Shown here one piece after another: positions 44,372 to 59,715 of a DNA stretch of 64,000 bases. How positions within the stretch are numbered: the first letter of the stretch is position 1; each line of letters begins with the position of its first letter. Under the pieces are notes generated by a model that searched no databases, had not been told where the DNA came from, and saw nothing but the letters and a program-made list of their open reading frames with translations. Source of the stretch: Paramoeba atlantica (lineage: Eukaryota; Protista; Discosea); assembly GCA_977017575.1 (NCBI GenBank), contig CDRNVI010000043.1, positions 682,001 to 746,000 of the forward strand, written 5' to 3'. Both the position numbers and the translations under genes were made by a program.

Positions 44372-45190
44372 TCATATCGCATAGTCTGTACCCCGTTTGT
44401 CCTTCTCAAGAAAGGATCTCAGCTGCGAATATACAACAGCTCCATTCAACTCTTGAAGACAGAGTTGAAACTCCATCTGCGTCTGTTTTCGAGGCAGGCA
44501 ACAAGCGTCTGCTAGGGCGTTGAGAAGAGATTTCGTATTTTCGTGTAGAGACCCGCCTGACAGCACTGGCACGCACCGAAACGTTTCCTCTGATATCAAA
44601 CCCGAGCGAACATAGGTGTCTTGTTTACGTTTGATCGCGTCGCGAAAAAGTTTGCCACATTTTGTTCCGAGATTAGAGGGCGCTAACTCGTGAATCACGG
44701 TGAAATCATAGAATATCTCGCCGGAATTCCAAAAAACTACAAGATCGGGACCCGATCTGCGGAAAGAACGGCCTCCGCAAACTTTTCCATGCGTCCGTCT
44801 GTAATCAGGATCCACTTTTTCGTTGCATTGTGTGCACGAAAACGTTGCGAAATTACGCGGCTCTTTTTCGCAGGGAATCCCAGCTTTTAAACACAACTCG
44901 TAGAGAAAATTTACTAAAGAGTTATGCTTCGCTGTGGCGTTGAGACCGGGGCATTTCGAACAGCCAGGTATGTGCGCGAGCATGGCTTTCGAATCTAGCA
45001 GAATCCGGCACCCGGGGCAGAGCAACTGTTTTGGCAGTAGAGGATGCGCGATTCCGAGTCGCGGCATTAAAGCAAGCGAAAAAAGGCGCGAGGGAACAAA
45101 CTTAGCATTAGACATGACCCATTCTGCGTTGCCCTTATATGAGACTGCTTGTAAGATGGCAACCGAGTCTGACTTCGAAGAAGCACACAC
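44372..45190 (-). pseudogene. 5'-truncated B-type CRE 3' fragment (Zn knuckle + RLE)
   Basis: LALMPRLG, CPGC, SGPDLVVFWNSGEIFYD. Confidence 0.85.
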
Positions 45191-46026
45191 GATTAGTCCG
45201 TTTCCTAGGTGAATTGTGTGCCAAAGCAGGGGTGCCCCATGTTATAGAACCTCGAGTACATTCATCATTCTTCTGCACCAAATGTAAGGCCACCATATCC
45301 GAAGAGCTCTCTGAACATCACCCATGCAGAGCAAGACGTATGCGATCAGGCCCTGATCTCGGTATCATGTGGTCCCATCTCGGAGAAATTCTCTACGATG
45401 TCACCGTAGTTCACAGTTGTGCCCCGAGCTATGCCAAAACCTCCGTCGAGCAGTTAATCCAAAATGCCCTTGAGCGCAAGCACAAAAAATACGTTGTACA
45501 AGGGGGCATACCGAAAGAAAGTTTCAGCTGCTTGGCAATGACCGAATTAGGACAGTTGCACAACAACACGAAAACTCTCATTGTCTCGCTCGCACAACGG
45601 TCACAACAAAACGTGAAGGATGTCAAAGAAGCGTTCCAACTTGAAATAGAGAAGATGAACGCGTACACAATTGCCACGCAACTCCGACAATACTTTCCAC
45701 CAATTCAGTGGCTCGGAGGACTTGAACACTAATCAGAATTTCCTTTCACTTACAACCTCTATTCGATTTGATAAAATTCCCCGTCATCTACGTTGATATC
45801 ATCTCATGATCTAAGTTGATATTAACTTATTTCAGATAAAGAGCTCACGGAGAGTATTGCTGCTGTTAATGTCTGTACTTTTCTCAATATGCTTTACAAT
45901 AGGAGGAACCAAGGAGTGAATTTTGTTTGTTTGGAGTGAATTTTGCTTGTTTTAATAGTTTACTCATTATTCATTCTTTATATTCTTGGTAGGTGTTCTT
46001 TATAAAAAGTGTGTTCTTTATAAAAA
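45190..46026 (+). pseudogene. 5'-truncated I-subfamily CRE 3' fragment, back-to-back with the previous one
   Basis: LVRFLGELCAKAG, CTKC, SGPDLGIMW; closely similar to the C-terminus of 39347..41056. Confidence 0.85.
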
Positions 46027-47560: not shown

Positions 47561-49622
47561 CTCGGGCCGCTCTGGAGGCTATTCCTCCAGAGTTGCGATG
47601 GGGTCTTCGGAAGGTGAACGAGCAACCATCATGCGCGCTTGAAAGCGCATAAGGGTTATGTTTAGTTCAGCGAAGATTCGGCTCGTTGCCTCACCTTCCG
47701 AAAGTAGACCCCCCGAGGCGTGCGAACACCTCTCACCGACTTTGCGGAGCACGGCTGAAGCGCTGGGGCTCCAGGCGCCATAACTTTCGACAACCATGGC
47801 CGTAAAGTCGCATCCTGCCTCTACGGCTTCTCGACGCTGCTTGCCCTTCTCCATTGAGGAATAATGTTCGGCAAATGACCCCGCGGCAACCCAGCTAGCG
47901 TTTCGGACTTTGTCCGTATATTTTAATTGCTGAGCATGGGTGACCGCGAAGTCAAGCACAATGGGATTTCCAAGAAAAAGGCTGGGCAAGTATATGTCGC
48001 CAGGTCTGGTGAGGGCCCCGCCTGGGCCCCTGTTCCCGAGACTCTTTTCTCGTTGAGGGGCGAGGCGGGCTCGACTGCACACGTCCGCGAACTGGTCCGT
48101 AACAGCGTTGTGCCTGGTCACAATACCATGGCCATGTTTGCAAGACAGTGCATGGTCCCCTTTGCTGTCAAGGGGGAGCGAGCATTTCGGCATGGGGCAC
48201 GTGCTATCTTCATGGTAGATGTCCACGCCTAACCACCAACGGGCCAAAGTTCGGAATTGTGTGGGGGTAAAGGCGTGCCCAAGGTCTTTCGAAGGAGTCA
48301 CAAAGGCCCAGCTGCTCGCTCCCGTGCCACACTGGGAGATCCACCTTGCACGGGTTCGTGCGTCAGTTGTCTCATATTCCTGGGAAAAGGCATGGGCTGC
48401 AATAGCATAACTGATTACCCGCTGGCGCGGGATCTTCCCTTTGGGCCACTGTGGGGGTAACATGTCCTGGCATTCTTCAGAACCGTAGAGGGGAGTCGAG
48501 AGTGGGTAGGCATCCGTGGGTGTGTTGGCCGTGCGGGAAGTCGTACGAAGAATATGTCCCGGAGGCTCGTCCGGGGGGTGAGGATCATTCCCTGGCGGAG
48601 GGCGCCTTCTCTTCCGGTAGGAGTACGGCGCGCTCAGGGCCTTCTCGCATGGGGCGTTGGGAGTTGTGAGAACACGACCTCGGGGATCGAGGAGAGCAGT
48701 GCCGGCCTTCTGATTGATGTCGAGGATGGCCTCCGAGAAACCTTCAGCGTCTGTGGGATCCCAGGAATCTGTGGCAGAGGCAAAGGCGACGGATGCAACG
48801 TAAGCCGCGGAGGCGTGGAGAGCTGCGGATCTCAGACCTAATCCCCCATGACGCTTCAGTCGCTGTGCTTGAGATTGTGCTGACCTGTCCAGAGGACAGA
48901 TGATTGCCTCTATAGCGGTCATGAGAAAGTCGTCTAAACGGGAGCAAAGGTGAATCAGGGACTGTGGGGGCGTGCTTCTCATGGCATACACCATTTGACA
49001 GAACCCCGCACATTGACGAATTAGGGCAAGCGCGACCTGGGGGTCCTGAATGTTGGTGATGGCATCGAGGGTATCCTCGGCTGGTTCTAGGGCGTGAGAA
49101 AGAAGATAAGCAGAGCAGTGGTCGGCGGATCCTACAGGACTCCCTAGTATGTCAAAGTTCCCCTGCGAATTGATCTTCTCGTCGGGTATGTCTGGGAAGT
49201 AATCAGCCTGGTGGGCCGAGCTGGGGGAAGTAATAATTTCGCATTTCGACGTATTGAGATACAAGCCCCATTGAGGTCCTACTCGGGCGATCGTGTCTAG
49301 GGCGTCTCTAACTTCCTGCGCCTGGCCAACGAGGACGCCATCGTCGAGATACCAGAGTTGGGCGGGAATATCAGTTTGAAGGTTAATGGCTTCTGAGAGC
49401 TTCAGGGCCACTAACGAGAAGAGCAATGGTCCTAGGGGATCGCCCTGTTGTACTCCTTCCTCGGAGGAGATGAATCGGGCCTCGTAGGTAAGAGAGCTGG
49501 GGTCGGAATAGCACCAATTGATCCAAGGGAAGAGTTCCGGGAAATATTCCTGTACTAGTGGAAGGAAGGCAGCCCTGCTTACGTTATTGAAAGCGTTACG
49601 TAGGTCCACTTTGCACATGTAT

Positions 49623-52600
49623 GACCTTTCCTTATTGTAAGACCTTTCCTTATTGTAAGACCTTTCCTTATTGTAAGACCTTTCCTTATTGTAAGACCTT
49701 TCCTTATTGTAAGACCTTTCCTTATTGTAAGACCTTTCCTTATTGTAAGACCTTTCCTTATTGTAAGACCTTTCCTTATTGTAAGACCTTTCCTTATTGT
49801 AAGACCTTTCCTTATTGTAAGACCTTTCCTTATTGTAAGACCTTTCCTTATTGTAAGACCTTTCCTTATTGTAAGACCTTTCCTTATTGTAAGACCTTTC
49901 CTTATTGTAAGACCTTTCCTTATTGTAAGACCTTTCCTTATTGTAAGACCTTTCCTTATTGTAAGACCTTTCCTTATTGTAAGACCTTTCCTTATTGTAA
50001 GACCTTTCCTTATTGTAAGACCTTTCCTTATTGTAAGACCTTTCCTTATTGTAAGACCTTTCCTTATTGTAAGACCTTTCCTTATTGTAAGACCTTTCCT
50101 TATTGTAAGACCTTTCCTTATTGTAAGACCTTTCCTTATTGTAAGACCTTTCCTTATTGTAAGACCTTTCCTTATTGTAAGACCTTTCCTTATTGTAAGA
50201 CCTTTCCTTATTGTAAGACCTTTCCTTATTGTAAGACCTTTCCTTATTGTAAGACCTTTCCTTATTGTAAGACCTTTCCTTATTGTAAGACCTTTCCTTA
50301 TTGTAAGACCTTTCCTTATTGTAAGACCTTTCCTTATTGTAAGACCTTTCCTTATTGTAAGACCTTTCCTTATTGTAAGACCTTTCCTTATTGTAAGACC
50401 TTTCCTTATTGTAAGACCTTTCCTTATTGTAAGACCTTTCCTTATTGTAAGACCTTTCCTTATTGTAAGACCTTTCCTTATTGTAAGACCTTTCCTTATT
50501 GTAAGACCTTTCCTTATTGTAAGACCTTTCCTTATTGTAAGACCTTTCCTTATTGTAAGACCTTTCCTTATTGTAAGACCTTTCCTTATTGTAAGACCTT
50601 TCCTTATTGTAAGACCTTTCCTTATTGTAAGACCTTTCCTTATTGTAAGACCTTTCCTTATTGTAAGACCTTTCCTTATTGTAAGACCTTTCCTTATTGT
50701 AAGACCTTTCCTTATTGTAAGACCTTTCCTTATTGTAAGACCTTTCCTTATTGTAAGACCTTTCCTTATTGTAAGACCTTTCCTTATTGTAAGACCTTTC
50801 CTTATTGTAAGACCTTTCCTTATTGTAAGACCTTTCCTTATTGTAAGACCTTTCCTTATTGTAAGACCTTTCCTTATTGTAAGACCTTTCCTTATTGTAA
50901 GACCTTTCCTTATTGTAAGACCTTTCCTTATTGTAAGACCTTTCCTTATTGTAAGACCTTTCCTTATTGTAAGACCTTTCCTTATTGTAAGACCTTTCCT
51001 TATTGTAAGACCTTTCCTTATTGTAAGACCTTTCCTTATTGTAAGACCTTTCCTTATTGTAAGACCTTTCCTTATTGTAAGACCTTTCCTTATTGTAAGA
51101 CCTTTCCTTATTGTAAGACCTTTCCTTATTGTAAGACCTTTCCTTATTGTAAGACCTTTCCTTATTGTAAGACCTTTCCTTATTGTAAGACCTTTCCTTA
51201 TTGTAAGACCTTTCCTTATTGTAAGACCTTTCCTTATTGTAAGACCTTTCCTTATTGTAAGACCTTTCCTTATTGTAAGACCTTTCCTTATTGTAAGACC
51301 TTTCCTTATTGTAAGACCTTTCCTTATTGTAAGACCTTTCCTTATTGTAAGACCTTTCCTTATTGTAAGACCTTTCCTTATTGTAAGACCTTTCCTTATT
51401 GTAAGACCTTTCCTTATTGTAAGACCTTTCCTTATTGTAAGACCTTTCCTTATTGTAAGACCTTTCCTTATTGTAAGACCTTTCCTTATTGTAAGACCTT
51501 TCCTTATTGTAAGACCTTTCCTTATTGTAAGACCTTTCCTTATTGTAAGACCTTTCCTTATTGTAAGACCTTTCCTTATTGTAAGACCTTTCCTTATTGT
51601 AAGACCTTTCCTTATTGTAAGACCTTTCCTTATTGTAAGACCTTTCCTTATTGTAAGACCTTTCCTTATTGTAAGACCTTTCCTTATTGTAAGACCTTTC
51701 CTTATTGTAAGACCTTTCCTTATTGTAAGACCTTTCCTTATTGTAAGACCTTTCCTTATTGTAAGACCTTTCCTTATTGTAAGACCTTTCCTTATTGTAA
51801 GACCTTTCCTTATTGTAAGACCTTTCCTTATTGTAAGACCTTTCCTTATTGTAAGACCTTTCCTTATTGTAAGACCTTTCCTTATTGTAAGACCTTTCCT
51901 TATTGTAAGACCTTTCCTTATTGTAAGACCTTTCCTTATTGTAAGACCTTTCCTTATTGTAAGACCTTTCCTTATTGTAAGACCTTTCCTTATTGTAAGA
52001 CCTTTCCTTATTGTAAGACCTTTCCTTATTGTAAGACCTTTCCTTATTGTAAGACCTTTCCTTATTGTAAGACCTTTCCTTATTGTAAGACCTTTCCTTA
52101 TTGTAAGACCTTTCCTTATTGTAAGACCTTTCCTTATTGTAAGACCTTTCCTTATTGTAAGACCTTTCCTTATTGTAAGACCTTTCCTTATTGTAAGACC
52201 TTTCCTTATTGTAAGACCTTTCCTTATTGTAAGACCTTTCCTTATTGTAAGACCTTTCCTTATTGTAAGACCTTTCCTTATTGTAAGACCTTTCCTTATT
52301 GTAAGACCTTTCCTTATTGTAAGACCTTTCCTTATTGTAAGACCTTTCCTTATTGTAAGACCTTTCCTTATTGTAAGACCTTTCCTTATTGTAAGACCTT
52401 TCCTTATTGTAAGACCTTTCCTTATTGTAAGACCTTTCCTTATTGTAAGACCTTTCCTTATTGTAAGACCTTTCCTTATTGTAAGACCTTTCCTTATTGT
52501 AAGACCTTTCCTTATTGTAAGACCTTTCCTTATTGTAAGACCTTTCCTTATTGTAAGACCTTTCCTTATTGTAAGACCTTTCCTTATTGTAAGACCTTTC

Positions 52601-54104
52601 CTTATTGTAAGACCTTTCCTTATTGTAAGACCTTTCCTTATTGTAAGACCTTTCCTTATTGTAAGACCTTTCCTTATTGTAAGACCTTTCCTTATTGTAA
52701 GACCTTTCCTTATTGTAAGACCTTTCCTTATTGTAAGACCTTTCCTTATTGTAAGACCTTTCCTTATTGTAAGACCTTTCCTTATTGTAAGACCTTTCCT
52801 TATTGTAAGACCTTTCCTTATTGTAAGACCTTTCCTTATTGTAAGACCTTTCCTTATTGTAAGACCTTTCCTTATTGTAAGACCTTTCCTTATTGTAAGA
52901 CCTTTCCTTATTGTAAGACCTTTCCTTATTGTAAGACCTTTCCTTATTGTAAGACCTTTCCTTATTGTAAGACCTTTCCTTATTGTAAGACCTTTCCTTA
53001 TTGTAAGACCTTTCCTTATTGTAAGACCTTTCCTTATTGTAAGACCTTTCCTTATTGTAAGACCTTTCCTTATTGTAAGACCTTTCCTTATTGTAAGACC
53101 TTTCCTTATTGTAAGACCTTTCCTTATTGTAAGACCTTTCCTTATTGTAAGACCTTTCCTTATTGTAAGACCTTTCCTTATTGTAAGACCTTTCCTTATT
53201 GTAAGACCTTTCCTTATTGTAAGACCTTTCCTTATTGTAAGACCTTTCCTTATTGTAAGACCTTTCCTTATTGTAAGACCTTTCCTTATTGTAAGACCTT
53301 TCCTTATTGTAAGACCTTTCCTTATTGTAAGACCTTTCCTTATTGTAAGACCTTTCCTTATTGTAAGACCTTTCCTTATTGTAAGACCTTTCCTTATTGT
53401 AAGACCTTTCCTTATTGTAAGACCTTTCCTTATTGTAAGACCTTTCCTTATTGTAAGACCTTTCCTTATTGTAAGACCTTTCCTTATTGTAAGACCTTTC
53501 CTTATTGTAAGACCTTTCCTTATTGTAAGACCTTTCCTTATTGTAAGACCTTTCCTTATTGTAAGACCTTTCCTTATTGTAAGACCTTTCCTTATTGTAA
53601 GACCTTTCCTTATTGTAAGACCTTTCCTTATTGTAAGACCTTTCCTTATTGTAAGACCTTTCCTTATTGTAAGACCTTTCCTTATTGTAAGACCTTTCCT
53701 TATTGTAAGACCTTTCCTTATTGTAAGACCTTTCCTTATTGTAAGACCTTTCCTTATTGTAAGACCTTTCCTTATTGTAAGACCTTTCCTTATTGTAAGA
53801 CCTTTCCTTATTGTAAGACCTTTCCTTATTGTAAGACCTTTCCTTATTGTAAGACCTTTCCTTATTGTAAGACCTTTCCTTATTGTAAGACCTTTCCTTA
53901 TTGTAAGACCTTTCCTTATTGTAAGACCTTTCCTTATTGTAAGACCTTTCCTTATTGTAAGACCTTTCCTTATTGTAAGACCTTTCCTTATTGTAAGACC
54001 TTTCCTTATTGTAAGACCTTTCCTTATTGTAAGACCTTTCCTTATTGTAAGACCTTTCCTTATTGTAAGACCTTTCCTTATTGTAAGACCTTTCCTTATT
54101 GTAA
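49623..54104 (+). repeat. Tandem array of GACCTTTCCTTATTGTAA, 249 units (4482 bp), apparently homogeneous
   Basis: 4482/18 = 249. The translation is an unbroken (TFPYCK)n. Confidence 0.95.
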
Positions 54105-54120
54105 TCGTTATAATTAGGCC

Positions 54121-57100
54121 ATGGATACCTCCGGCACGGTCAATGAGAGAAAGCGGTGTTCTGACCCGGTTGCTCTTATTGGTCGGTCCAGGTTAGGTCG
54201 GGGCGTCAATTTTTGGCCATCAAAGTCAAAGGTTGGCGTAGCAAAACTCCGTGATCGTGCGGTAACCAGTATGTCCAACACGATTCGTGCGGGGTCTCGT
54301 GTCGCTGTGGTCTGGCGCTGGTCGTTTGCTCAAAGGCTAAAGATGTGGCAAGGGACTGCGAAATTTCGGGCCAAAAATGGTCTATGGCGTATTCGCTATG
54401 ACTGTTGTCCTGGAGTATCGTTTCCTTTTCCCCCTATAGACCCACGAGTAGCGATCTGTGCGGGCCGCGTGGCACCCCCCCGTAAGAAGAAATGTAGGAA
54501 GCACCGTTCTGCGCGACTTCCCCGTCGGAATGGCTCCCCGGCGGTCGAGGAATCTAACCCCATTGCCACGAACAAGACGCTACATCTTGCAACTCTAAAC
54601 GTCACTACCCTGAAACTAAAGGGAACTGATTATTTCTCCCTTCGCAAATCGACACGACTACGGGAAATTATGTCGTACATGGTCGAGCGAGGCCTTGCCC
54701 TCTGTTGCCTTCAGGAAACTCGTGTACAAACCGATATCATTCAAAACATTGCACATCAGACAATTCGTCATGGAAAGTTCGTATTTCATGTTTATATTCA
54801 AGGCGCTATCAAAGGTTACGGTGGACTCATGATTCTAAGCCTATTTGAGCCTGCTCTTGTGTCGCGAATCAGTGATCGGATCCAACAGGTTACTCTAGAC
54901 TTACCAAAATTCCACGGTGTGCTATTCAATGTTTATGCCCCCACGGCGGTGGCAAAAGATGACGTAAAGGAGAAATTTTGCAATGATCTACGTGATGCAT
55001 GGAATCTTAGTAATGCGAAAATAAAACTTGTTCTGGGGGATCTTAATGCGCCACTGACAGATAAGTGTCAGCGAATAATGCGTAAAAATAAGGCACAACA
55101 TCGGCTTACCAATTTACTGTCTGAGCTTGGGGCTCGCGCGGCACATACATCCTGCCCAAGCAGAAAGAAGTGGACTTATACTTTTCAAAATGGAACTGTA
55201 AAACAACTAGACCATATTCTTGTCAACAAACGTTTCGTCACTACCTTACATGGCCACAGAGTTCTCCAACCCCCGGTGCCGACTCGACATCAAATAGTAA
55301 CAGTAAAAACTAAGTTTCGTTGGAAAGCTTCAGTAAATGACGGTAGCTTGCGATTACCGTGGTATCAGTTAAAGGATCCACAAATATGTATGGACTTCAT
55401 ACGCCGTGTGAAAGAGAACTACACCGAACATGCGGAGATAGTTGGGATGAAAAGAAGACGAAATGAGCCAAACCAGAAAATGTCAACCGAAATGCCTGTG
55501 ATATTTCCAAGTGATATTTTGTGGGATAAATTGGAAAAAGCAATTATCATGGCTGCTGAATCTATACCAACGAAGGAGGAAAACATAAACATGTTTGCTT
55601 CAAACGATGAAACTACTACACAGTTGCGAATCCGTGACATTTTCCGTACGTCTCAAAGTCCGCAGAGGTTCGATTCTCTAGTAAAAGAACATAGCATCAC
55701 CGTGAATGAAAATATCACTCAAGAATGCCTGTCTCTACAACAAAACTTTCAAAGATACAAACGTTCTTCTTGGAGACATGTTAAAATGATGACTGGGCAC
55801 ACTTCATCACGCCTCAGACCGCCAGGAAAAACAAAAAGCGAACAATTATGTAATGTGCGATTACACTTTCAGAATACTGTGCAACTAAAGGAGGTAGACA
55901 ACAAGATCAAATTTGCGGAAGCGCCAAAGTCGTTTATCCCTATATCTGATGGACCGTTTGATCTCAATGAATTGACGACTGCTCTTAAAGATATGGCAAC
56001 TGGTAAAGCACCAGGCATTGACTCGATTCCAATTGAAGCCTTACGAGTACTGAACAGCGATCCGTTCATACAATCTATTCTTCTACATTTAATTAATATG
56101 GTTCGTGAGAGCGGAAGAGCGCCACAGACATGGAAACGACTTATCCAAGTCCCAGTTCCGAAAAAAGGCGACTTAGGCAACATGAACAATTGGAGACCAA
56201 TATGTCTAATAGTGCACGCTGCAAAACTCATGAACCGTATGATACTAAATCGAATTCTTCCTACAGTGGATGCTCAATTAAGTGATTGTCAATACGGATT
56301 CCGACCCAATAGAGCAACAACGGGAGCACAAGCAACCCTCATTGAGTTGTGCCAGAAAGCGTCTCGTGAGAATCCTGGTGTTGCGCTAGGCTTCGTGGAT
56401 TTCCGTCAGGCATTTCCTTCAGTCAGCTTTTTCTCCATTCGTGCTGCACTGGAAGCCTTTCACATCCCGCAGCATCTCAGCAGCATGATAATGTCTATGT
56501 ATGAAAAAACAGAAGCAGTTGTACGATGCAAAAGCGGAGTTACTGATACGTTTCCGATCCAGTGTGGCACACTTCAAGGTGATGTTTTGGCCCCTGTCCT
56601 ATTCCTCATGGTTCTGGATCGAGTCATGGCTGAAGTGTATAAGGAAAATGAGTTCGGACTTATCTTGCGAAGGGCGGGCACAAAAAGACAAGGAAAGCCT
56701 GCGCAATGTCTAAATTATTTAGCATACGCGGATGATTTAGTGCTCATATGTCCCTCTCTTACTAATTTGAATCGCGTTATGGAAAGACTGGAACAAACAG
56801 CTGCGAAAGTCAACTTACGTCTCAACATTGGTGTAAATAAAACTGCGTGGATGACAGTAGGTCAAGTGAATGACGCACAAGGAGACTTGATTCTAACGAA
56901 TGGGGGGTTGGTGCCTCGAATCACCGAATATCGATACTTGGGGTTGAAAATTACTAATAAGGGTGTCATTGTAAACTTTGAAGACCGAATTAACTTAGCG
57001 TGGGCTGCAACACATCGCCTACAGTCATTATGGAAATCAGGCCTCACGCTTGTCACAAAATTTCACTTATTCGAATCTCTGGTTTCACCTTTATTGCTGT

Positions 57101-58326
57101 ATGGCTGTGGAAACTTTTCCCTAATAAAAAAAGACGCTGATTTAATTGACTGTGAAGTGAACCGAATGAGAAGACTAGCGCTCGGGGTTCGTACTTGGGA
57201 TGGTACAAGAGGTGCACCATGTGATGCACTATATGGGAACAGAATGCGACTTTCTAACGCATGTCGAGTCCTCCGAGTTCAAATGCTAGGACACCTGATC
57301 CGCGGCAATAATCCCTTCAAATCGGTAATGCTATGGCGCAAAGCAACAGGAAAGAAATATCGTCCCACTCTATCAGAGGCATGTGCTGAAGACATGGAAC
57401 TAGATGTCGAAGATCTCAATGTCCTAGCGGGAGATCGGGATTGGTGGGCGTCGAGAGTTAAATTTTTGCGTGAATATCTTGAATCTCACAAATCCTACAT
57501 GGTTTTCGGCTCTAGATCCTGGAAGAAGGTATGCCAGGACTTAGATACTACCACCTACAAAGTACTCGAAGGAATTGAAGAAGGCACGGACCATTCTCCT
57601 CTCTCAGCTGATTCCGAACACATATACGTAGATGGGGCTGTCAGTTCAGAAGCAGGAAAACCAGCCGCGGGTTCGGGGATAGTTATTGTTAATTCAAATG
57701 GTGTAAGAACCAGACAACACGTTTTACCACCGGAATGCACTTCACCGGATCGGGCTGAACTTCGCTCCTTTCTTTTAGGCATTCAGGCAGCTTCGTCTTC
57801 TACGAGGAACACAGTTATACATACTGATTCTCATTATGTATGGGACTGGTATCATAATGTTAGGGTTCGTTTTTCAATCATTGGATACGGTGGCATGCCA
57901 AATGCTGACCTACTCACGCAGATACAAGGAGCAATTAAAGAGCGTTGTACAGATAGTAGTCTCTACGTTATTAAAGTGCGGGCACACTGCGGGAATTCCT
58001 TCAATGAAAAAGCTGATGAAATAGCACGCAAAGCACAGAGAACAGCTGCACGTCGTTTTTCATGCGTCATTCACACGCAAAGGGAGGGAAACAAATCTAA
58101 TCACGGTCAAAAAAGGGAGCATGATCTCCAAGAAAAATCTCCACACAAAGTGAATATGAAAAAAGGGAAACTGAAAAATACAGAAGAAGGCAGCACAGTC
58201 AGGATTGCTCGTTCACTCAACCCAGAAGCTAATACCGGGGATCCAGTAACGTTTTCTCAGTACAAGACATCACGGGGTAGACTGACGAATGCCCCCATTT
58301 TTGTGAAGAAAAGCCGCTATATGTAA
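54121..58326 (+). CDS. APE endonuclease-RT-RNase H polyprotein (1401 aa; Met51 at 54271 is an alternative start)
   Basis: APE: ATLNV, CLQET, NVYAPT, GDLNA, LDHIL. RT: KAPGID, WRPIC, QYGFR, DFRQAF, QGDVLAP, YADD. RNase H: YVDG, AEL, TDS, HCGNSFNEKAD. Confidence 0.92.
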   Translation: MDTSGTVNERKRCSDPVALIGRSRLGRGVNFWPSKSKVGVAKLRDRAVTSMSNTIRAGSRVAVVWRWSFAQRLKMWQGTAKFRAKNGLWRIRYDCCPGVSFPFPPIDPRVAICAGRVAPPRKKKCRKHRSARLPRRNGSPAVEESNPIATNKTLHLATLNVTTLKLKGTDYFSLRKSTRLREIMSYMVERGLALCCLQETRVQTDIIQNIAHQTIRHGKFVFHVYIQGAIKGYGGLMILSLFEPALVSRISDRIQQVTLDLPKFHGVLFNVYAPTAVAKDDVKEKFCNDLRDAWNLSNAKIKLVLGDLNAPLTDKCQRIMRKNKAQHRLTNLLSELGARAAHTSCPSRKKWTYTFQNGTVKQLDHILVNKRFVTTLHGHRVLQPPVPTRHQIVTVKTKFRWKASVNDGSLRLPWYQLKDPQICMDFIRRVKENYTEHAEIVGMKRRRNEPNQKMSTEMPVIFPSDILWDKLEKAIIMAAESIPTKEENINMFASNDETTTQLRIRDIFRTSQSPQRFDSLVKEHSITVNENITQECLSLQQNFQRYKRSSWRHVKMMTGHTSSRLRPPGKTKSEQLCNVRLHFQNTVQLKEVDNKIKFAEAPKSFIPISDGPFDLNELTTALKDMATGKAPGIDSIPIEALRVLNSDPFIQSILLHLINMVRESGRAPQTWKRLIQVPVPKKGDLGNMNNWRPICLIVHAAKLMNRMILNRILPTVDAQLSDCQYGFRPNRATTGAQATLIELCQKASRENPGVALGFVDFRQAFPSVSFFSIRAALEAFHIPQHLSSMIMSMYEKTEAVVRCKSGVTDTFPIQCGTLQGDVLAPVLFLMVLDRVMAEVYKENEFGLILRRAGTKRQGKPAQCLNYLAYADDLVLICPSLTNLNRVMERLEQTAAKVNLRLNIGVNKTAWMTVGQVNDAQGDLILTNGGLVPRITEYRYLGLKITNKGVIVNFEDRINLAWAATHRLQSLWKSGLTLVTKFHLFESLVSPLLLYGCGNFSLIKKDADLIDCEVNRMRRLALGVRTWDGTRGAPCDALYGNRMRLSNACRVLRVQMLGHLIRGNNPFKSVMLWRKATGKKYRPTLSEACAEDMELDVEDLNVLAGDRDWWASRVKFLREYLESHKSYMVFGSRSWKKVCQDLDTTTYKVLEGIEEGTDHSPLSADSEHIYVDGAVSSEAGKPAAGSGIVIVNSNGVRTRQHVLPPECTSPDRAELRSFLLGIQAASSSTRNTVIHTDSHYVWDWYHNVRVRFSIIGYGGMPNADLLTQIQGAIKERCTDSSLYVIKVRAHCGNSFNEKADEIARKAQRTAARRFSCVIHTQREGNKSNHGQKREHDLQEKSPHKVNMKKGKLKNTEEGSTVRIARSLNPEANTGDPVTFSQYKTSRGRLTNAPIFVKKSRYM

Positions 58327-59715
58327 TCGAAATTTGCTGTGTATAACTTTGCGCATTAATCTGGAACGCTTATTTTCAGGAGTGTTATGTCCTCTTGGTA
58401 CATTTATTTATCAACGCGTTAATAATATTCTGGAGCATTTATGTATATTTCATTGCTAAATATCCGTACTCATCGAAAACACTGAGTGGGGTACGTAATA
58501 TTGATAGTATACGGTGGTTTATTTGGCAAGCAGAGAACAAGTTGGCGCTGAGTTGCTCTTCGGGCATATGACGCGGCAATGAAGGCAAGAACTTGCGTAC
58601 TGCTTAACCCTTGGTACCGCGTTGAATATCGATGGTGAAATATTGAGCTGAAAATGGCTAATTGTAAGATTGTTCTGGTTTGCTTGTGCTCGTTTGTACA
58701 CGTTTTCTCCTAATTGCAAAAGAGGATAGGTCTCCTACCTCCATTCGCATAATCCGCGGTTTGGCCTATTCGTGATGTGGATAGATGTTTCAGTGCGCTA
58801 AGGAGAGTGTACGTTGAAAGTTGCATGTGTATAGTCTTTTGTTATTATTATTATTATTATTACTTTGCACATGACGAAGTTCGGGTTTTCCATATTGGAC
58901 GACATGGCCAGGCGACACATGTGAATGACTCTTTCGGCCCCGGCTGGCGCTGCCACTCCGTACTGTTTGCCTTCAAAGAGCTCGCTCGCTTTGGGTCGGA
59001 TTGCGTTGCATACGGCTTTGCTCGCTAATCGCCGAAGGGTTTCACCGGCAGCGATCGGACGAACATCATTTTCGCCCTTTGATAGGGCGCATAAGCGCGC
59101 CCCTGCGAAGTGCGCCTGTACTTCAGAGGGTGCCTTCCCAGCTAGGAGGTGATTTGTTAGCTTTGTGAGGGATCGGAGAAAGTCATTTCCGTGTACGAGC
59201 AGTGCTGCCTGTAGGTGCTCTGGGCGTAATCCCATAGTGCCGGCAGAGGAACCCCTGTTGAAGCTCTTCAGCGTCTTTGCAACTTCGCGTTCGTCAAGTT
59301 CCAGTGGAGCGCAGTTCGGGGGCGGGCAGTTTTCGCACGAGTCAATTTGAAGACGACGGGGGTGTTTTTCTAGCAATTTTTCAAATGTCTCGTCATCGTC
59401 AGGCGCCATTGGATCTGACGTTAGGGAGGCCAACCCTCTAGAGAGCTCGCCGTGGCGGACGAGGAGTTCTGCTCGAATCGCTGCCTTCTCGTCTTCGTCA
59501 GGGAATTCCGTTGGAGATTTTTTTTTTTTTTTTTTGTCTTTGTTTTTTTTGTCTTTGTTTTTTTTCTTTTTTTCTTGTCTTTTTTTTGCACCAATCACCA
59601 CTATACCTCTCGTATCTCCCACATGTCTGAGCAAGAAAGACGTATGCATCTTGATCGATGTTGATGTCGTACGTCCTTGCAAAAAGTCTGCTCGTCATTA
59701 CAATTCGTAGAAGAA

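Follow-up and report, generated by a model that had tools for sequence, protein, structure and literature searches.

Positions 49608-58873 of the window analysed here, a stretch of 64,000 nucleotides (nt) of Paramoeba atlantica DNA (GenBank assembly GCA_977017575.1, contig CDRNVI010000043.1, positions 682,001 to 746,000 of the forward strand), are best read as one recent insertion of a non-LTR retrotransposon (one without long terminal repeats, LTRs) that encodes an apurinic/apyrimidinic endonuclease (APE), a reverse transcriptase (RT) and RNase H, and whose leader is the reiterated head of a predicted ribozyme. We put the probability of this reading at about 60%. Long interspersed nuclear elements (LINEs) headed by a ribozyme like that of hepatitis delta virus (HDV) are known; a leader in which the predicted ribozyme's first 18 nt are repeated up to hundreds of times was not found in the open-access papers searched. 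Judging from the sequences compared, this layout is common to many related LINE families.

If correct, the reading would describe how a mobile element can give rise to a minisatellite or satellite by way of an RNA template, and a means by which a ribozyme-dependent LINE insures its exact 5′ end against truncation. It would also describe an HDV-like fold with a helix in place of the L3 loop, whose core is at the same time the start of a coding frame, with RNA and protein constraints overlaid.

Boundaries and contents of the insertion

The first-pass annotation of the window had placed a long 18-mer array inside the target-site duplication of the insertion, and both direct reading of the sequence and a script bear this out. 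Two copies of the 12-bp sequence ACTTTGCACATG, at 49608-49619 and 58862-58873 and given without strand, enclose a series of features that all lie on the plus strand. These are a TAT filler before G1 of the first unit (49620-49622), an array of 249 identical 18-nt units GACCTTTCCTTATTGTAA without a variant unit (49623-54104), a 16-nt linker between array and coding region (54105-54120), a single open reading frame (ORF) of 1401 aa (54121-58326), a 3′ untranslated region (UTR; 58327-58841) and a (TTA)6TT tail (58842-58861). The filler is probably an untemplated addition at the 5′ junction. Tandem Repeats Finder reports 249.3 copies with 99% matches for the array, the 3′ UTR has at least eight other copies at 97-100% identity, and the length of the tail differs from copy to copy.

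The host of the insertion is a protist retrotransposon, whose ORF is interrupted on the minus strand; its downstream piece, with an RVT_1 domain, lies at 47579-49618 and its upstream piece at 58874-59682. As had been claimed, this ORF rejoins across the insertion: removal of the insertion and one duplication copy in a script leaves a continuous minus-strand frame of 953 aa, with the junction falling in RT motif A. The rejoining is a test of the frame only, and the two host pieces were searched separately. Elsewhere in the 45.7-Mb genome, the predicted empty site (a 32-mer that contains ACTTTGCACATG once) is matched perfectly at 16 places and with one mismatch at two more; its reversed control gave 0 occurrences in the genome. 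Together the duplication, the rejoined host ORF and the 18 empty sites prove the boundaries of the insertion and place the array inside them. The empty sites are without the array, in agreement with the earlier view that it is not a pre-existing satellite.

Following an N-terminal module, the 1401-aa ORF carries the Pfam domains Exo_endo_phos (aa 176-377, 4.6e-06), RVT_1 (aa 679-944, 2.6e-30) and RNase_H (aa 1166-1305, 1.8e-15), and its RT region matches the structures of R2 and L1 ORF2p with E values of 1e-19 to 1e-21. The features of an APE-type LINE are all present, namely an ORF with endonuclease and RT, a target duplication, a simple-repeat 3′ tail and a 5′-truncated copy. The domain order fits the label 'ingi-like' that the element had been given; no named ingi/L1Tc protein was found among 67 word-search matches to the ORF, and its Atlas neighbours are generic APE-RT-RNase H clusters that do not resolve the clade.

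A 1498-aa open frame through the array (49621-54117) was considered as a gene and rejected: the 18-nt repeat has two frames free of stops, and the long frame is a consequence of this. The TAT filler together with G1 supplies its ATG, the units themselves being without ATG, and it is in frame with the pol ORF with a TAG between them. The frame is probably meaningless.

The array in other copies of the family

The 400 nt that follow the array, used as a query, found seven copies of the family in the genome, at C43 (the window), C46, C25, C5, C40, C47 and C83. The first six are full length, and the C83 copy lacks at least its first 30 nt and has no array. In all six full-length copies the same 18-mer adjoins the same linker and ATG, and since every one of them carries the unit at this linker, the array is part of the element. 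The claim that it belongs to the element is therefore upheld, both by its position inside the target duplication and by its presence in six of six full-length copies. The first-pass annotation had also raised the possibilities that full-length copies lack the unit, which is clearly not so, and that the array occurs independently elsewhere, which is partly true, as orphan arrays exist.

Examination of the 5′ ends of these copies, as had been suggested, gave unit numbers from 7 (C5) through about 53 (C40), 69 (C47), 81 (C25) and 239 (C46) to 249 (C43). Three of the six full-length copies start exactly at unit G1, which is indirect evidence for the predicted cut 5′ of P1 described below. The C25 array lies inside its own 11-bp target duplication, GTGTTTCCTTT, to which the array is joined through 5 nt of microhomology with the unit; a clear target duplication was looked for at the C40, C46 and C47 copies and none was found. 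For the C46 array (G000:C46:157060-161362) the ends were read and the interior was probed, and the C39 arrays described below were likewise probed and not read end to end. An array of 650 or more units at C46 was considered and rejected, as probing gave the 239-unit array, then unrelated sequence and then a second array. The two youngest copies are nearly equal in array size (249 and about 239 units); a maximum size close to that of the element body, or a limit of the assembly, could be the reason.

A predicted HDV-like ribozyme at the head of the element

The first-pass annotation saw no HDV-like ribozyme in the element. This part of it is not supported, as a covarying double pseudoknot is predicted to run from G1 of the last unit into the start of the ORF. 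We propose that it represents an HDV-like self-cleaving ribozyme at the element head, with a predicted cleavage site directly 5′ of G54087. The predicted core overlaps the ORF start, and it resembles the HDV-like fold in its topology, the P1.1 pseudoknot, the cytosine of J4/2 and the G at +1.

On the plus strand, the parts of the predicted fold are arranged as follows. The P1 5′ strand of the last unit (54087-54092) pairs with 54194-54199 through 5 bp and a T.T mismatch, with family-specific covariation. It is followed by the J1/2 hairpin (54093-54119), in which the end of the last unit pairs with the 16-nt linker, and by the P2 5′ strand CATGGA (54120-54125), which holds the ORF start codon ATG, pairs with 54248-54253 and covaries. 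The segment 54127-54132 comprises the P3 5′ strand ACCT (54127-54130) and the CC of P1.1 (54131-54132). A stable hairpin (54133-54189; -24.5 kcal/mol, z -3.46) then occupies the place of the HDV L3 loop, and the segment 54190-54201 contains the P3 3′ strand AGGT (54190-54193), the P1 3′ strand TAGGTC (54194-54199) and the GG of P1.1 (54200-54201). The P4 hairpin (54204-54238; -15 kcal/mol, z -4.92) is followed at 54241-54253 by J4/2, GCAAAAC with the candidate catalytic C54242, and the P2 3′ strand TCCGTG (54248-54253). Both the L3 insert and P4 are more stable than shuffled sequences. The short L3 loop of about 7-8 nt by which an HDV-like ribozyme is recognised is absent, and the two P1.1 bases are present.

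Each unit can be divided accordingly: nt 1-6 form the P1 5′ strand and nt 7-18, which pair with the linker, form the 5′ arm of the J1/2 hairpin. The partner arm in the linker is present for the last unit only. A P1 placed at the GGTC directly after CCTCCGG was rejected, since it was without covariation in other families.

Covariation across related families

The predicted fold was compared across 15 families, comprising the window family, four relatives from unrelated metagenomes (L047, L049, L050 and L051) and ten paralogous families of the genome that were found with the N-terminal 200 aa. The metagenome relatives have 29-38% protein identity and their own 18-mer arrays at the start; a metagenome scan with an N-terminal alignment returned four loci, one of them useful. 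Nearly all of the 14 relatives and paralogous families are headed by a 17-19-nt array of their own.

One double-pseudoknot model fits all 15 families, and at the level of sequence P1, P2, P3 and P1.1 all covary across them. P1 comprises 5-6 contiguous pairs from G1 in every family, formed by 11 different 5′ strands, and cross-family combinations of its strands average 2.47 pairs. Its 3′ partner is the 6 nt after a conserved AGGN, corresponding to two variable codons between a conserved Arg and a conserved Arg-Gly. P3 takes the form NCCT/AGGN′, with the compensated variants GCGT/ACGC and GCTT/AAGC, while P1.1 pairs the dinucleotide that follows P3 with the one that follows P1; most families have CC/GG here, and two have TC/GA. 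In P2, which covaries, the bases immediately ahead of P3 pair with those directly behind a conserved C-N-A-A. The P4 hairpin is located between P1.1 and J4/2, and wherever P2 can be placed, in 14 families, its 3′ strand is preceded by the J4/2 motif C-N-A-A, which agrees with the C-N-R-A of HDV-like ribozymes. All helices, in the canonical order P1-P2-P3-P1.1-P4, can be placed in 14 of the 15 families, L068 being without a mismatch-free P2. A J1/2 hairpin of family-specific sequence occurs in 12 of 12 families (z -2.5 to -5.0), and a hairpin stands at the L3 place in all families, with differing sequences.

In a MAFFT alignment of six cores (A2), 94% of the P2, P3 and P1.1 cells are paired, and shifting the partner by 1-3 columns lowers this to 19-53%. 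Changes on both sides are seen in five pairs, and the covariation score was reached by 0 of 500 shuffles. A placement of the L051 core at an upstream CCTCC was discarded when the MAFFT alignment showed the true motif elsewhere, which fitted P2 and P1.1.

Two further loci carry altered versions of the core. In L067 (G000:C4:279710-280100), a two-unit copy of a related family, about 190 nt of A-rich inserted sequence break the predicted ribozyme behind P1.1. The related copy L060 (G000:C17:8140-8530) keeps the 3′ half of the ribozyme core, with unrelated sequence replacing the array, linker and P2/P3; it is a recombined or 5′-replaced copy.

Age of the arrays

The six full-length copies differ at 3-31 positions in 1.9 kb of body, which implies a private body divergence of about 0.1% for C43, C46 and C25, 0.3% for C40, 0.7% for C47 and 1% for C5. 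The variants within the arrays (one T insertion at a joint, one T loss, three kinds of substitution and one 3-nt loss) are all private, lie at different distances from the linker and have a density similar to or below that of the body. Only one substitution, in the C47 array, is repeated in two neighbouring units. Because the variants of each array are its own and about as thinly spread as mutations in the body, turnover of whole units at the DNA level must have been rare since insertion.

The youngest copies, at about 0.1%, carry the longest and purest arrays (239 and 249 units), that of C43 with zero variants in 4482 bp, and in the older family L066 the array has decayed and has not been homogenised. 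Because variants are private and sparse, the youngest copies have the longest arrays and the L066 array is decayed, it seems that the arrays came with the elements or arose at insertion. We conclude from these comparisons that the arrays probably date from insertion, without slow growth later.

A possible mechanism of array formation

The perfectly phased long arrays were most likely written during retrotransposition, and we favour, at somewhat less than even odds, reiteration by the RT or end-to-end template jumping as the means. Reiterative synthesis by the RT at the 5′ junction was among the explanations offered by the first-pass annotation, and of these it is still the strongest candidate. 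According to this model, the element would be transcribed within a longer RNA, and the ribozyme would cut directly 5′ of a unit G1, mostly at the last unit because that is the sole unit with a linker partner. The cut would set the 5′ end of the template RNA. Having arrived at G1, the RT would either re-copy the terminal unit, by slippage on a template of two or more units, or jump end to end onto ribozyme-released RNA pieces of whole units, from G1 to A18. As such pieces are whole units, the array would stay in register and could grow. The spare heads would then shield daughter copies from loss of the exact 5′ end that the ribozyme needs. That a LINE clade writes minisatellites with its own RT, at hundreds of phased units per insertion, and that array-only inserts sometimes become free satellites, is a possible extension of the model that we put forward tentatively.

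Scars at the joints between units fit writing by an RT, and are suggestive but weak evidence for it. At internal joints they consist of the gain of one base (T or, in two cases, A) and the loss of a G1; at two array heads, that of the window with its TAT among them, an additional T precedes G1.

A number of observations weigh against a ribozyme-headed element with an RT-written leader. No match to the Rfam HDV-type models was obtained in 53900-54700 at E<=10, nor any Rfam match at gathering score in the entire window. The L3 loop is replaced by a hairpin of 42-57 nt, a replacement that takes in the position of the G that in HDV forms a U.G reverse wobble, and we know of no active HDV-like ribozyme with such an L3 hairpin. 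P1 in the window family has only 5 pairs and a T.T mismatch. Part of the conservation of the core lies at the protein level, because this stretch is translated; the compensatory changes, and third codon positions that never vary in the CCTCCGG motif, argue for their part for RNA constraint. As to the writing itself, the patterns used in the search for joint scars see joints only, and in the fully read arrays one of six variants lies at a joint. The sequence does not separate RT reiteration from the copying of a long leader RNA, and the unit count of 249 comes from the assembly. Finally, there are orphan arrays of about 80 and 117 units, at G000:C39:733184-734650 and 740149-742270, without the element body next to them. 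Both stop at unit nt 15 (..TTATTG), as does the mini-array L008, an end phase that the proposed mechanism leaves unexplained.

Alternative origins of the arrays

Faithful inheritance of the array seems unlikely to us, and is the most probable of the alternatives. Here the RT would copy a leader of several kb in which a distal unit had been used, so that daughter arrays would be nested truncations of a long master array; the transcript would come from an upstream promoter or polycistronic read-through and be cut by a distal ribozyme or begin at a distal start site. Every unit has the same P1 strand, which makes distal cleavage possible, and R2 ribozymes tolerate J1/2 loops of 216-498 nt (PMC3774820). 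The arrays, moreover, start at G1 or, via microhomology, inside a unit, as 5′ truncation would have them do, and the range from 7 to 249 units resembles a truncation series. With the J1/2 linker partner available to the last unit only, however, proximal cutting should dominate, and a pairing over 4.5 kb would have to outcompete 248 nearer identical sites. No array variant is common to copies at equal distance from the linker. Arrays inherited in this way would only shrink, yet many divergent families have long ones. It is because leader copying must choose a unit 4.5 kb away over 248 nearer ones, and could only shorten arrays, that we favour synthesis by the RT at the RNA 5′ end.

Expansion at the DNA level after insertion appears less probable still. 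One or a few units would arrive with the element and grow by replication slippage or unequal exchange, perhaps seeding free satellites. A perfect 18-bp repeat is intrinsically prone to slippage, the C47 substitution shared by neighbouring units indicates duplication at the scale of a unit, and the orphan arrays without an element body would be accounted for. The older copies (0.3-1%), however, keep scattered private variants at near-neutral density, which implies slow turnover, and both the length of the youngest arrays, one of them invariant, and the decay of the L066 array run counter to gradual growth and homogenisation. Post-insertion expansion, which the first-pass annotation had offered as one explanation, is thus disfavoured as a slow process by the private and sparse pattern of variants.

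A third proposal, which we regard as improbable, is that the units serve, like those of mouse L1, as promoter or initiator monomers in tandem, or as trans-splice acceptors made of a pyrimidine tract and AG, with the pairing to the ORF secondary. Each unit does have a T-rich tract, and its AA end before the following G creates an AG at every joint; a start site would also explain the three copies that begin at G1, and Pr77 of L1Tc combines promoter and ribozyme (PMC3185411). A spliced leader, however, stands at the start of no copy, which means that the template's 5′ end does not come from splicing. From family to family, unit nt 1-6 change in exact step with the ORF segment, a pattern predicted neither for a promoter nor for an acceptor, and the T-rich tail is accounted for by the J1/2 hairpin.

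It is very improbable that an assembler inflated a few true units of a simple repeat, for although the European Nucleotide Archive (ENA) contig L046, considered as an independent assembly, proved to be the C47 locus of the same assembly with identical variants and so offers no independent check, the six copies have six lengths and private variants at fixed places, which would not be expected of inflation, the array lies within a long contig with unique flanks, and among the relatives, too, metagenome contigs built from short reads begin within arrays of this kind.

Comparison with known systems

By analogy, the 5′-junction duplications of R2 provide what looks to be the nearest precedent for the arrays. 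In a minority of R2 5′ junctions, the 13-28 nt that begin where the ribozyme cuts are present twice in tandem, so that either of two P1 sites can be used (PMC3774820). R2 is also like the window element in that a ribozyme at the 5′ end (predicted in the latter) frees the template from a co-transcript, that the P1 5′ strand lies at the extreme 5′ end and that J1/2 can be long. In R2, however, there is one extra copy, of target (28S) sequence, whereas the window-type families carry their own 17-19 nt up to about 250 times, and do so in most copies. R2 further differs in its normal L3 loop, its site specificity and its restriction-like endonuclease.

L1Tc has an HDV-like ribozyme, L1TcRz, at +1 within the 77-nt hallmark Pr77 (PMC3185411, PMC4035085), and Leishmania SIDER2 has two tandem 79-nt hallmarks (PMC5509151). 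Like the window element, L1Tc and ingi, which belong to euglenozoan hosts with spliced leaders, are single-ORF APE-RT-RNase H LINEs with an HDV-like ribozyme at +1, predicted in the case of the window. The L1Tc ribozyme sits in a 77-nt UTR block, whereas the core predicted here overlaps the ORF start, and unlike the hallmarks of SIDER2 and L1Tc, only the first 18 nt of the predicted ribozyme are repeated, and hundreds of times. The 5′ end of the window element, consisting of the 18-mer array and the linker, is without an Rfam match, and no sequence similarity to Pr77 was reported, though no Pr77 reference was aligned.

Mouse L1 is likewise headed by a variable number of tandem units that differs between copies. 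Its monomers are about 200 bp long and act as promoters, whereas the units of the window element are 18 nt long and covary with the predicted ribozyme strand. Telomerase and the template jumping of R2 resemble the proposed writing, in that an RT makes short head-to-tail repeats or crosses RNA ends without homology; end-to-end jumping by the R2 reverse transcriptase was reportedly described by Bibillo and Eickbush in 2002. Telomerase differs in having an internal template RNA or anchor, of which none is known for the window element, and the activity is proposed for the latter by analogy. A search of the open-access full-text literature for ribozyme-head arrays in LINEs found none, and found ribozyme-headed LINEs and the R2 duplications.

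Arrays without the element and other repeats

Other genomic locations of the 18-mer, which had been suggested as a check, include the orphan arrays and mini-arrays without the element. Near both C39 orphan arrays lies a sequence ending in CTAGTAAT, and one of the two arrays ends before a T12 run. The mini-arrays L055 (G000:C22:62300-62750), L056 (C22:134750-135200) and L057 (C14:389450-389900) consist of a partial unit and 1-3 whole ones, stop exactly where a unit is complete and run into 7-13 A; the pattern used to find them sees in-phase ends only. They may be retroposed 5′ cleavage fragments, and the A run of L057 may instead be a target duplication. Two mini-arrays, L007 and L008, end out of phase. 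A 0.8-kb repeat (L007:231-1046), 99% identical to window positions 45176-45993, lies on another contig, about 450 nt upstream of a 2.5-unit mini-array.

At G000:C147:30570-45851 (L031, L036-L045) there is a tandem repeat with a period of 748 bp and at least 20 units, each of which contains the last 50 nt of the element 3′ UTR. The repeat is on the strand opposite to that of a nearby element copy.

The host retrotransposon also exists in copies without an interruption, spaced 7.26 kb or 3.99 kb apart (G000:C17:61631-76188, C48:304519-319074 and C55:274102-286111). Such regular spacing is what one would predict of a site-specific element that lives among tandemly arrayed genes, and it fits the label 'CRE-like' for the host.

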